Source of the DNA: Octopus bimaculoides
Taxonomy: Eukaryota
Length of the DNA stretch: 43,677 nt
Assembly (NCBI RefSeq): GCF_001194135.2
Contig: NC_068983.1
Location: forward strand, 149,795,964-149,839,640
Direction of reading: 5' to 3'
The translations under genes and the position numbers were made by a program. How positions within the stretch are numbered: the first letter of the stretch is position 1; every line of letters starts with the position of its first letter. This document shows, one piece after another, positions 1,641 to 41,456 of the stretch. The notes under the pieces were generated by a model. It did not search any database. It was not told the DNA's origin and worked only from the letters and a program-made list of their open reading frames with translations.

Positions 1641-1708
1641 TTAACGACGGCCATCAAAAATAGTAAACTGCGGGACGATTTCGTTAGTGTTCGTATCAAC
1701 GGATTCAG
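1641..1708 (+). CDS. Exon: middle of SEA domain 1 ([23 protein letters not shown]), 68 nt, phase 0 to 2
   Basis: ctcctttcag acceptor, AG|gttggt donor. Same length and phase as, and similar peptide to, exon 17325-17392. Confidence 0.85.
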
Positions 1709-40700: not shown

Positions 40701-41456
40701 TTTGTGCTCGACCGTGTGACGCGTTTAATAAAAGGAGCCCTGTTTTTCCATTCGTCACCATTTCTCCTTTTGGGTTCGCACGGTCGTTCTTACACAGTGA
40801 TTGATACTCTATGTTCATATTTTTCATTGTTTATTCGTTTTCTTATTGGTATGAGTCATATTCCGGATGTAAACAGTTCGTATATTTCCAGGTTAACGCA
40901 TTTCATGATTTATACGTTTTATGATTCATAGCTTTTATGATTTAGTATTTCATGGTTCATATATTTCATATCTGAAGAATTTCATTGTCCAGATAGATTT
41001 CTTGCTTGATATGTTCCGAGAGTCTCAAAAATAGTTAGCTTGAGGCCAAATTATGCAAACTATACTGATACAATTAAACACACACACACACACACACACA
41101 CACACACACACACACACACACACACACACACACACACACACACACACACACACACACACACACACACACACACACACACGATTGAGTGGACAAACGAAAG
41201 AATGGGACACTCAACACATTCAGTAGGAGTTACATGTATTTAAAACAGTTTGAGTCGAATCGAATCAAACCAAACCAAACTGTTTTAAATAATATTTATG
41301 TATAATTGAATTTAGAAATCTTATTCTTCATTTCAGATGTCGACGCATGTTCAAATGAGACAATTTGTGGCATTAATTCGATATGTAAGAATACACGTGG
41401 TAGTTATCAGTGTGAATGCAAAACAGGATATAAGAAAGTTGGAGCCATTTGTCAAG
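1641..41456 (+). CDS. Partial multi-exon gene for a large mucin-like extracellular or cell-surface protein: SEA / S-T stalk / SEA / S-T stalk / Ca-binding-type EGF (both ends outside window)
   Basis: Eight exons with AG/GT boundaries and matching phases (0-2, 2-1, 1-0, 0-2, 2-1, 1-1, 1-1, 1-1) join into one open frame of 4417 nt. It carries two G-S-V SEA motifs, long Ser/Thr-rich regions and a six-cysteine EGF. Confidence 0.88.
2530..3000 (-). mobile_element. 5'-truncated R4/Dong-like non-LTR retrotransposon 3' end (restriction-like endonuclease region)
   Basis: [41 protein letters not shown]. Flanked on both sides by (TTA)n (2481-2529 and 3001-3038). Confidence 0.8.
3039..3531. repeat. Unclassified non-coding interspersed repeat embedded in triplet microsatellites
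   Basis: Complex sequence bounded by (TTA)n and (TTC)n, with no recognisable protein motif. It resembles a high-copy octopus repeat from memory only. Confidence 0.45.
3532..3677. repeat. Compound microsatellite (TTC)n(TTA)n
   Basis: Directly visible. Confidence 0.98.
3678..3852 (-). mobile_element. Extreme 3' end of an R4/Dong-like element
   Basis: Minus strand reads [19 protein letters not shown]-stop, then a short UTR and (TAA)n. Confidence 0.7.
4543..4915 (-). mobile_element. R4/Dong-like fragment with CCHC zinc knuckle; 3' part lost in the N gap
   Basis: [40 protein letters not shown]. The gap is followed on the minus strand by (TAA)n 3853-3948. Confidence 0.82.
4945..5662. mobile_element. 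Foldback or MITE-like non-autonomous DNA element with about 180-bp terminal inverted repeats
   Basis: 4945-5126 is the reverse complement of 5479-5662 at roughly 85-90% identity by eye. No ORF inside. Confidence 0.8.
7619..7728. repeat. (CA)n microsatellite
   Basis: Directly visible. Similar CA/TG, TA and TACA tracts occur near 1853, 19781, 23030, 24770, 26150, 27203, 39660 and 41078. Confidence 0.98.
7914..8116 (+). CDS. Exon: C-terminal half of SEA domain 1 ([13 protein letters not shown]...IDVNQTSFI), phase 2 to 1
   Basis: ctctctttcag acceptor, G|gtagga donor. Joining gives [11 protein letters not shown], which matches the SEA F-x-x-G-S-V-x-V motif. Confidence 0.88.
8122..8216. repeat. 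(TTA)n microsatellite starting 5 nt into the intron
   Basis: Directly visible after the donor GTAGG. Confidence 0.98.
8605..9763 (-). mobile_element. 5'-truncated R4/Dong-like element (RT thumb through endonuclease, decayed)
   Basis: [19 protein letters not shown] near the 5' end and [19 protein letters not shown]-stop near 8690. (TTA)n on both sides. Confidence 0.82.
9848..10100 (-). mobile_element. 3' end of an R4/Dong-like element, different subfamily
   Basis: [34 protein letters not shown]-stop, then UTR and (TAA)n 9764-9847. Confidence 0.8.
10132..10590 (-). mobile_element. 3' end of an R4/Dong-like element, another subfamily
   Basis: [39 protein letters not shown], then UTR and TAA-rich tail 10101-10131. 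Confidence 0.8.
10591..10790 (+). mobile_element. tRNA-derived SINE
   Basis: A-box-like TGGCAGAATCG, B-box-like GAGTTCAAATTCC, and the family central block CTTTCATCCTTTCGGGGTCGATAAA. Confidence 0.85.
11467..11686 (+). mobile_element. tRNA-derived SINE; probably the same physical copy as 10591-10790, duplicated by the assembly
   Basis: 11467-11668 matches 10589-10790 across an N gap, apparently base for base. Confidence 0.7.
11687..11879 (+). mobile_element. tRNA-derived SINE, same head with a different 3' tail
   Basis: AGAATCGTTAGCACGCCGG..GGTTCAAATTCC and tail GAAATTGCTGGCATTGTGCTAAAA, followed by (CAT)n(ATT)n. Confidence 0.8.
12010..12226 (+). mobile_element. tRNA-derived SINE
   Basis: GTGGCAGAATCGTTAG..GAGTTCAAA..CCTTTCGGGGGTCGATAAA, ending in ATT repeats. 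Confidence 0.8.
12931..14480 (+). CDS. Exon: Ser/Thr-rich mucin-like stalk plus N-terminal part of SEA domain 2 ([35 protein letters not shown]), phase 1 to 0
   Basis: ttcgttttag acceptor. The frame is open from 12933, upstream of the ORF-track start at 13176. TTT|gtaagt donor. Confidence 0.9.
16525..16685 (-). mobile_element. tRNA-derived SINE
   Basis: Reverse complement of the same head and central block. Confidence 0.8.
17325..17392 (+). CDS. Exon: middle of SEA domain 2 ([23 protein letters not shown]), 68 nt, phase 0 to 2; not in the ORF track
   Basis: Poly-T plus gtag acceptor, CG|gtagtt donor. Bridges the phase-0 donor at 14480 to the phase-2 acceptor at 20652 and parallels exon 1641-1708. 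Confidence 0.85.
17856..19045 (-). mobile_element. Near full-length decayed mariner element with an internal inversion
   Basis: TIR-like TATTGGGTTGTC at 17856 and its inverse ending at 19045. Minus strand gives ATG at 18878 ([15 protein letters not shown]), PRQS.RELAQKM and [12 protein letters not shown]. The HDNAR segment is on the plus strand. Confidence 0.85.
19660..19765 (-). mobile_element. Degenerate tRNA-headed SINE fragment
   Basis: Minus strand GGTGGCCTAGT...GCTTCGATTCC (A- and B-box-like). Confidence 0.5.
20652..20797 (+). CDS. Exon: C-terminal half of SEA domain 2 ([15 protein letters not shown]...IDSQQINFT), phase 2 to 1; not in the ORF track
   Basis: ttgcag acceptor, G|gtgagt donor. 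Canonical GSVVV motif. Confidence 0.9.
22171..22743 (+). CDS. Exon: Ser/Thr/Pro-rich mucin-like segment, phase 1 to 1
   Basis: tacttttcag acceptor, G|gtaata donor. Open S/T-rich frame (ORF 22176-22781). Confidence 0.85.
24020..24260 (+). mobile_element. Fragment resembling an RTE-type 5' UTR
   Basis: TAGTGGAGAAGGAAAACTTTG resembles the CTAGAAGAAGGAAATCTC block in the 5' UTR of the RTE at 27294-31180. Confidence 0.4.
25180..26000 (-). mobile_element. Penelope-like element terminal-repeat (pLTR-type) fragment; boundaries approximate
   Basis: Contains a minimal type I hammerhead motif with palindromic stem III, a known PLE hallmark. Confidence 0.55.
25235..25282 (-). ncRNA. Degenerate minimal type I hammerhead ribozyme motif
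   Basis: GUCU-GUGAUGA-AGGGGUAU-CCCUA-AUAUCCUA-GAAA-CAGCUG-UA-AGAC. Stem I is GUCU/AGAC, stem II is a hairpin, stem III is palindromic. C3 is replaced by G. Confidence 0.7.
26550..26900 (-). mobile_element. Possible L1/Tx1-like ORF2 C-terminal remnant
   Basis: Stop-riddled frame [18 protein letters not shown] followed by AATAAA. The similarity is weak. Confidence 0.35.
27294..31180 (-). mobile_element. Near full-length, decayed RTE-clade LINE (5' UTR, APE endonuclease, RT, three C-terminal C2H2 fingers, (CA)n tail)
   Basis: APE motifs WNIRTL, ESGVGFA, SIYAP and VILGDFNA (30197-30808). RT motifs [28 protein letters not shown] and GVKQ, then YLGS. Fingers lie in 27326-27745. The (TG)n at 27203-27293 is the tail. 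Confidence 0.92.
33055..34743 (+). CDS. Exon: long Ser/Thr-rich mucin-like segment, phase 1 to 1
   Basis: ttctatttttacag acceptor, G|gtaaat donor. 1689-nt open S/T-rich frame inside ORF 32934-34823. Confidence 0.88.
35654..35961 (-). mobile_element. tRNA-headed SINE of a second family
   Basis: Minus strand AGTGGCTAGGG..GAGTTCAATTCC, then GTTGTGTCCTTGAGCAAGACACTT, a block typical of CORE/V-type SINE central domains. Exact superfamily not determined. Confidence 0.75.
37040..37420 (+). mobile_element. Penelope-like pLTR-type fragment; boundaries approximate
   Basis: Carries the hammerhead-like motif at 37131-37167 in pyrimidine-rich flanks. Confidence 0.5.
37131..37167 (+). ncRNA. Minimal hammerhead-like motif with a non-canonical core
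   Basis: UCUUU-CUGUUGA-AGAACAUAGCUC-GAAA-CG-UC-AAAGA. Stem I is UCUUU/AAAGA, stem III is the palindrome ACGU, the cleavage site is UC, and A6 is replaced by U. Confidence 0.55.
38996..39140 (+). mobile_element. Degenerate SINE fragment
   Basis: GGCATGGCTTTGTGGTT head and GAAACTG..GAAGC..GTCG tail, recognised from memory of octopus SINEs. Confidence 0.45.
39150..39650 (+). mobile_element. Fragment of an R2-superfamily (HERO/NeSL-like) non-LTR RT C-terminal region
   Basis: With one frameshift it reads [44 protein letters not shown], later [14 protein letters not shown]. Confidence 0.65.
39798..40794 (+). mobile_element. Solo LTR, 997 bp, 4-bp TSD (Ty3/Gypsy-like by TSD length)
   Basis: Starts TGTA and ends TACA. 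CAGT lies on both sides (39794-39797 and 40795-40798). TATAAATA at 40030, AATAAA at 40727, and a short direct repeat near the 5' end. Confidence 0.8.
41337..41456 (+). CDS. Exon: calcium-binding-type EGF domain ([40 protein letters not shown]), phase 1 to 1
   Basis: tcatttcag acceptor, G|gtatgt donor. Six cysteines, D-x-D-x-C start and the C-x-N-x4-Y-x-C-x-C hydroxylation consensus. Confidence 0.92.

Follow-up and report, generated by a model that had tools for sequence, protein, structure and literature searches.

What kind of protein results when two SEA domains, two very long serine/threonine-rich (S/T-rich) stalks and a calcium-binding epidermal growth factor (cbEGF) module are encoded in one frame, and does it belong to a family already known? 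The question is raised by a stretch of 43,677 nucleotides (nt) from Octopus bimaculoides (contig NC_068983.1 of assembly GCF_001194135.2, positions 149,795,964 to 149,839,640 of the forward strand), hereafter called the window, in which all positions are counted from the first letter. Here we show that eight exons lying between 1641 and 41456 of the window are open throughout, are joined to each other in RNA and encode these modules in the above order. We consider it likely that the region is the central part of a spliced gene for a very large extracellular SEA-domain, mucin-like glycoprotein.

Exon structure and reading frame

An initial annotation, made from the sequence alone, had proposed eight in-phase exons coding for a first SEA domain (SEA1), an S/T-rich region, a second SEA domain (SEA2), another S/T-rich region and a calcium-binding EGF. 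All eight exons were located where they had been placed, on the + strand and bordered by AG/GT, and their phases chained without a break. When joined, they gave 4417 nt, i.e. 1472 codons with zero stops, and the encoded order was exactly the one proposed, with SEA1 (partial) followed by a stalk of 477 amino acids (aa), SEA2, a stalk of 754 aa and one cbEGF. The exons are as follows.

1641-1708, + strand: exon 1, 68 nt, entering in phase 0 and leaving in phase 2; middle of SEA1
7914-8116, + strand: exon 2, 203 nt; C-terminal two thirds of SEA1, with GSVNV at 7918-7932
12931-14480, + strand: exon 3, 1550 nt; stalk 1, then the N-terminal third of SEA2 starting at about 14361
17325-17392, + strand: exon 4, 68 nt, identical in length and phase to exon 1; middle of SEA2
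20652-20797, + strand: exon 5, 146 nt; C-terminal part of SEA2, with GSVVV at 20656-20670
22171-22743, + strand: exon 6, 573 nt, phase 1-1; first 191 aa of stalk 2
33055-34743, + strand: exon 7, 1689 nt, phase 1-1; other 563 aa of stalk 2
41337-41456, + strand: exon 8, 120 nt, phase 1-1; one calcium-binding-type EGF module

The longest stop-free stretches of the window in any frame, of 544 and 636 codons, were both located at the two long exons, as compared to a longest stretch of 187 codons when the window was shuffled 100 times. Thus, the frame is no chance open reading frame (ORF).

Both SEA domains are split by introns at the same two places and in the same phases. In each domain, the exon before the 68-nt one includes the N-terminal third and ends in phase 0, the 68-nt exon ends with ...GF in phase 2, and the exon that follows it begins at the G-S site. 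Exons 6, 7 and 8, and likewise the unit formed by stalk 1 and SEA2 (1764 nt), are modules of phase 1-1. As read from the sequence, the shared intron positions of the SEA domains together with the phase 1-1 modules point to internal duplication and exon shuffling. Being of phase 1-1, the stalk exons could be left out with the frame intact; only the full form, with no skipping of stalk exons, was observed in the RNA contigs.

RNA support for splicing

Splicing was checked with assembled contigs from public runs of the same organism, which were placed piecewise on the window. Contigs of runs X1, X2, X3 and X6 showed the behaviour of RNA and covered exons only; those of the DNA run X5 were even across exon 3 and its flanks. 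The initial annotation would have been contradicted by a lack of RNA support for its junctions, but all seven were present in the assembled RNA contigs, as given below.

1708 to 7914: X1
8116 to 12931: X6
14480 to 17325: one 466-nt contig of X2
17392 to 20652: the same 466-nt X2 contig, also X1 and X6; GT..AG
20797 to 22171: the same 466-nt X2 contig, also X6; GT..AG
22743 to 33055: X1, X2 and X6
34743 to 41337: X2, X3 and X6

Contigs over exon 2 (X1 and X6) had loose ends corresponding to the last part of exon 1 and the first part of exon 3, and X1-X3 contigs over exon 3 were confined to about 13070-14484. Exon 6 was covered by contigs of X1, X2, X3 and X6, all of which stopped at 22743. Over exon 7, RNA contigs tiled 33052-34743 and none went beyond, their loose ends being equal to the last bases of exon 6 and the first bases of exon 8, and exon 8 itself was covered by contigs of X2 and X3. 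A single-letter difference was seen at 33516 in exon 7 (stalk 2), where the RNA of X2 reads A and the assembly G, changing GAT (Asp) to AAT (Asn); other runs read G.

The following assembly gaps lie in the introns.

3949-4542: gap in intron 1
8260-8576 and 10791-11466: gaps in intron 2
25026-25129, 26227-26474 and 31280-31593: gaps in intron 6
36091-36148: gap in intron 7

Every gapped intron (1, 2, 6 and 7) was bridged by an exon-exon contig with nothing inserted, so that the gaps hide no exon of these transcripts and the frame is unaffected by them.

SEA and EGF domains

Domain identity was ascertained by Pfam, for which the cut-offs are 26.4 bits for SEA (PF01390) and 27 bits for EGF_CA (PF07645). 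SEA2 scored 43.9 bits. The part of SEA1 within the window scored 25.5 bits, which rose to 32.7 bits when 10 upstream residues known from RNA were included. The EGF module of exon 8 scored 33.2 bits, or 38.7 bits with its flanks. Hence SEA2, the RNA-extended SEA1 and the EGF all exceeded the cut-offs of the very families to which the initial annotation had assigned them.

The AlphaFold model of SEA2, built on a 24-sequence alignment, had a predicted local distance difference test score (pLDDT) of 90.6 and a predicted template modelling score (pTM) of 0.83, and its elements followed the order beta-alpha-beta-beta-alpha-beta, i.e. the alpha/beta sandwich of the SEA fold. A Foldseek search with this model gave seven matches at E <= 0.001, all of them SEA domains (9nrc, 1ivz, 7sa9, 8vm1, 8gkl, 2e7v), the top ones being TMPRSS6, MUC16 and a mouse transmembrane protease, with query-normalised TM-scores of 0.61-0.80. 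A sequence search of the PDB with SEA2 returned chance-level matches only (E > 0.5).

SEA domains that cut themselves are reported to follow the rule GSxxV, where x is V or I (PMC9478142). SEA2 carries the canonical motif GSVVV, which satisfies this rule, and SEA1 carries the non-canonical GSVNV, which fails it. Among the 24 aligned SEA domains, G-S was the sole pair that never varied, and in the SEA2 model G70-S71 is placed in a turn between strands 59-68 and 73-81. Self-cleavage of SEA2 is thus predicted from its motif and its model.

Direct reading of the exon 8 EGF revealed six cysteines and the Asn-hydroxylation consensus C-x-N-x4-Y-x-C-x-C. The module starts with DVDA-C, in which the residue ahead of the first Cys, usually Glu or Gln, is Ala, and therefore the calcium affinity of this first cbEGF may be reduced.

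S/T-rich stalks

Stalk 1 contains 38% S+T and has a net charge of -32, and stalk 2 contains 36% S+T with a net charge of -55. Both are acidic, with 4% Pro and about 33% hydrophobic residues, and 15 of the 25 N-x-S/T sequons of the 1472-aa model lie in them. No tandem or internal repeats were found in the stalks besides one (ATC)n tract, and BLASTP revealed no internal similarity. The stalks being poor in proline and one third hydrophobic, the term mucin, as used in the initial annotation, is drawn from the S/T content and not from any match to a PTS domain. On these grounds the stalks are S/T-rich spacers and not classical PTS repeat mucin domains.

The (ATC)n tract is an imperfect microsatellite at 13412-13473 (period 3, about 16 copies, about 60 nt) within a serine-rich stretch of coding exon 3, and is likely to be a site of in-frame length variation. 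The k-mers of this tract drew very high depth from unrelated contigs.

We also looked for traces of further SEA domains in the stalks. A third SEA domain hidden in stalk 2, considered on account of a beta-beta-alpha-beta-alpha order in a low-confidence model, was rejected, as hhalign against the SEA alignment gave it a probability of 0.2%. A custom SEA profile picked up three faint SEA-core-like segments of 4-7 bits, at model residues 171-210, 368-415 and 1254-1298, which lie within 12931-14480 and 33055-34743. This was more than was obtained from any of 300 shuffles that preserved the composition, from the stalks in reversed order, or from the N-terminal S/T-rich regions of nine further SEA proteins among the matches described below. 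However, hhalign detected nothing in the one stretch of stalk 2 to which it was applied, the signal was not found in the ortholog described below, and the faint segments have no introns at the positions typical of the true SEA domains. That the stalks are decayed SEA repeats is thus speculative, and the signal may be due to chance.

Extension of the gene beyond the window

Contigs of X1 and X2 cover 1640-1708 and run at least 100-160 nt further upstream. This upstream extension ends with ...TCAACAGACATCGAAAATCATGTTGGATATG, which translates to QQTSKIMLDM and supplies more of SEA1. On the other side, a contig of X3 runs past exon 8 into ACGTTGATGAATGC... (longer reading ACGTTGATGAATGCACAACAGGTGAACATA), encoding (D)VDECTTGEH, the start of a second cbEGF with the canonical DVDEC. 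Neither of the two loose-end 30-mers matched anywhere in the window, and the downstream one was also absent from metagenome contigs. No Cys-rich open stretch was found in 41457-43677; the exon for the second cbEGF could lie in the 245-N gap at 42289-42533 or past the window end. Around this gap, a low-complexity GGT/GAT-type repeat occupies 41983-42600 on both strands and gives rise, on both sides of the gap, to long pseudo-ORFs rich in Gly/Asp and in Thr/Ala/Ile.

The window therefore holds the central part of a larger gene and not the whole of it. The domain order had been called unusual in the initial annotation. It indeed matches no characterised family, but it is the order of a fragment: the N-terminal third of SEA1 and at least one more cbEGF are encoded beyond the window.

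Ortholog in a related species and annotation status

Word-indexed protein searches of 5.8 billion protein clusters were carried out with SEA2 plus stalk 2 plus EGF, with the domains alone and with SEA1 plus stalk 1. Their single match, P0001, is an ORF that covers the orthologous exon 7 and lies on a 3.1-kb DNA contig (L001) of a related species. Exon 7 and its flanking intron showed about 86% nucleotide identity to this contig, with donor and acceptor conserved. Exon 7 kept its frame, and the ratio of non-synonymous to synonymous substitution rates (dN/dS) was 0.63. The related species carries 858 extra in-frame nt in exon 7, i.e. 286 S/T-rich residues (863-1716 of L001, corresponding to 33707-33710 of the window). 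RNA contigs of O. bimaculoides ran straight across this point without the extra 858 nt, showing that the shorter exon 7 is no assembly error, and stalk length therefore changes fast between close species.

None of the three word-indexed searches found an annotated protein covering the exons, and no predicted protein matched although the collection holds RefSeq proteins of other molluscs. This suggests that the gene is unannotated in this genome. Nor did the protein searches reveal a one-to-one ortholog of a characterised protein, a finding that would have told against the initial annotation.

Wider relatives and membrane mucins

An exhaustive HMMER search with SEA1 plus SEA2 against 1.84 billion representatives (E <= 0.001) gave 35 matches with 24-38% identity. 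SEA domains were present in all of them except P0016 and P0017, which had no Pfam SEA match, and most had S/T-rich regions and a transmembrane-like segment. The relatives included the following.

Stickleback LOC120824872: 14 SEA units with NMTSP repeats
Sea urchin (Diadema): giant protein with Sushi and 7 SEA
Abalone (Haliotis): DOMON and 7-SEA protein
Aplysia "mucin-3A, partial": five SEA
Turtle: mucin-16
Insects: single-SEA "mucin-5AC" proteins

No cephalopod protein and no characterised protein was present among the 35, and none had the order SEA, stalk, SEA, stalk, cbEGF. The best relatives, none of them above 31% identity, are mucin-like membrane proteins with several SEA domains that have yet to be characterised. 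A literature search for SEA-domain proteins in cephalopods or octopus returned nothing relevant. Alternation of SEA domains with S/T linkers is a common arrangement, being found in MUC16 and in the multi-SEA proteins of fish, sea urchin, abalone and Aplysia. MUC16 and the multi-SEA mucin-like proteins share this alternation with the octopus gene and gave the best SEA1 plus SEA2 matches (E from 3e-46 to 4e-6, 24-32% identity). As judged from these matches, the MUC16-type multi-SEA proteins are the closest family by sequence. They differ, however, in that their SEA units number 5-14, are nearly identical and are joined by short repetitive linkers, and in that the array is not followed by a cbEGF; the octopus gene has just two SEA domains, which are divergent, together with very long stalks of unique sequence and a tandem of cbEGFs.

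With MUC3, MUC12, MUC13 and MUC17, generally described in PMC9080433, the gene has in common that regions rich in S/T are combined with EGF modules and a SEA domain carrying G|SVVV. In those mucins, however, one SEA domain is placed directly between EGFs near the membrane and the PTS domain is a proline-rich tandem repeat, whereas here there are two SEA domains, neither of them adjacent to an EGF, and the stalks are non-repetitive and poor in proline (4%). The initial annotation had set the gene apart from this group, and the absence of both an EGF-SEA-EGF sandwich and a tandem-repeat PTS domain bears this out.

Proposed function

A very large extracellular, mucin-like glycoprotein with SEA domains is the likely product of the gene, and its overall role is most likely that of a cell-surface or apical-matrix glycocalyx component. 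Such a protein would enter the secretory pathway. Its stalks would be largely unstructured and heavily O-glycosylated, the latter a reasonable inference from their composition, and would form extended, negatively charged brushes that hold the SEA domains far apart. SEA2 would cut itself at G|SVVV during folding, giving two chains held together non-covalently, and the distal part could then be shed, or parted under force, as in MUC1 and IMPG2; SEA1 with its GSVNV would probably stay uncut. The tandem cbEGFs may act as a calcium-stiffened rod beside a C-terminal part that anchors or assembles the protein.

Several observations weigh against this assignment. The 4% proline and the one third of hydrophobic residues make the putatively O-glycosylated stalks different from classical PTS mucin domains. 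The self-cleavage of SEA2 is a prediction from motif and model only. In an AlphaFold run on stalk 2 plus EGF, for which two sequences were aligned, no pLDDT reached 50, even in the EGF, so that the run says nothing on disorder. The window holds no signal peptide and no transmembrane, GAIN or ZP region, so that secretion and anchoring would follow from the domain types alone. No ortholog was found beyond close relatives. The RNA word depth was low, about 3-7x, and the gene is absent from many RNA runs of the same species; expression is apparently low-level and tissue-restricted.

Alternative explanations

The initial annotation had suggested a glycocalyx, mucus or matrix protein, or the ectodomain of a receptor like the adhesion G-protein-coupled receptors (adhesion GPCRs). 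Since the termini of the gene are outside the window, a membrane mucin, a matrix protein and an adhesion GPCR cannot be separated by what the window contains, and the alternatives were weighed on the modules and on the relatives. One is a secreted matrix or apical extracellular-matrix protein, in which the cbEGF array would be followed by ZP, LamG or more EGF modules, in the manner of uromodulin, UMODL1 or agrin. The segments of agrin follow the order S/T, SEA, S/T, EGF, so that, as here, a SEA domain lies between S/T-rich regions and is followed by EGF, and UMODL1 combines SEA, cbEGF and ZP. The presence of a cbEGF tandem and the acidic, non-repetitive nature of the stalks would also suit a matrix protein. 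However, agrin has a single SEA domain. Its N-terminal follistatin/Kazal repeats and C-terminal LamG modules would be expected beyond the ends of the window, and within it neither these nor a ZP module was seen; besides, most of the relatives have a transmembrane-like segment soon after the last SEA. We regard a secreted matrix protein as rather unlikely.

The second alternative, the N-terminal ectodomain of an adhesion GPCR with cbEGF repeats followed by a GAIN domain and seven transmembrane helices downstream of the window, appears improbable. Some adhesion GPCRs (the ADGRE and ADGRF groups) carry EGF or SEA domains, the succession of a stalk and tandem cbEGFs resembles the EGF-bearing members, and the gene does go on 3' of the window with another cbEGF. 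The EGF region also matched GPR158/179_EC and ADGRF3_N with 16-17 bits, but these scores are far under the cut-offs of 28-31 bits and fall on a generic EGF. In Pfam scans, none of the 35 relatives of SEA1 plus SEA2 had a seven-transmembrane or GAIN family, and the contents of the window say nothing on a seven-transmembrane end.

[quoted passage not shown] Human IMPG2 consists of SEA1 (239-390), a mucin-like region, SEA2 (896-1012), an EGF tandem (1012-1098) and a transmembrane segment (1100-1120) (PMC10558372), and in IMPG the SEA-1 domain is without and the SEA-2 domain with a cleavage motif (PMC9478142). IMPG2 is thus the closest family by layout, as the module order is the same and here too the cleavage motif is in the second SEA and not in the first. 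On the other hand, SEA2 and the EGFs of IMPG2 abut, whereas 754 aa separate them here, which upholds the view of the initial annotation that the layout is not that of IMPG; the EGFs here are, moreover, of the calcium-binding type. There is a slim chance that the gene is an invertebrate IMPG-type counterpart, in which a SEA without cleavage would be followed by a mucin-like region, a SEA that cleaves itself, an EGF tandem and possibly a transmembrane segment. It could then act as a force-sensitive or shed component of a surface or sensory-epithelium matrix, and its long stalks may in part be what remains of an ancestral multi-SEA array whose SEA repeats decayed.

Slimmer still is the chance that the gene is truly homologous to IMPG1/IMPG2 of vertebrates and has had an additional stalk inserted ahead of the EGFs. 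Module order and cleavage pattern would fit such a homolog, but the length of that stalk does not favour it, and IMPG2 has been reported to be vertebrate-specific (PMC10558372). None of the 35 HMMER matches from the 1.84-billion-protein library had two SEA domains and an EGF tandem, and none of the 20 names that were looked up was IMPG; no direct alignment to IMPG was made. As SEA, mucin and EGF modules are often shuffled, the same order may also arise independently.

A transcribed but functionless locus, either a decaying gene or a chance low-complexity ORF with its domains as relics, would account for the low and patchy expression, the relaxed constraint on the stalks (dN/dS 0.63 and the 286-aa length difference between close species) and the lack of an annotated protein, but is very hard to reconcile with 1472 codons open over eight correctly spliced exons, with SEA2 and EGF above the Pfam cut-offs and a high-confidence SEA2 model, and with frame and splice sites kept in a related species.

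Other features of the window

The introns harbour remains of mobile elements. In the intron upstream of exon 1, a mariner/Mos1-type transposase remnant was detected in several frames, with HTH_48 at 57.9 bits and Transposase_1 at 67.8 bits. Intron 6 contains a retrotransposon resembling a long interspersed nuclear element (LINE), antisense to the gene, whose Exo_endo_phos endonuclease, RVT_1 reverse transcriptase and C2H2 zinc-finger ORF are separate, broken ORFs. An ORF that runs into the gap at 3949-4542 has a zf-RVT match of 24.3 bits, below the 27.5-bit cut-off, and is probably the tail of another retroelement cut by the gap. Two 202-bp stretches that directly flank the gap at 10791-11466 are 100% identical, which a tandem repeat copy or a gap-related assembly artefact could explain; being intronic, they have no effect on the gene. 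Scans of the window with Rfam and for tRNAs found nothing. The positions are as follows.

164-1162, + strand: mariner/Mos1-type transposase remnant
4546-4900, - strand: ORF with sub-threshold zf-RVT match
10589-10790 and 11467-11668: identical 202-bp pair
27326-30808, - strand: LINE-like retrotransposon

Significance

The gene is a new combination of familiar modules and not a new kind of system, and the class to which it belongs is known for shuffling. As it stands, the result is at the level of annotation and opens no new question: it adds an expressed, apparently unannotated gene together with a corrected exon model that spans six assembly gaps. Surface and matrix proteins of animals combine SEA, S/T-stalk and cbEGF modules in several ways, to which this gene adds another, with one probably self-cleaving and one probably intact SEA domain in the same chain. 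If the ends of the gene turn out to be IMPG-like or adhesion-GPCR-like, it would bear on the origin of shed or force-sensitive surface glycoproteins outside vertebrates.

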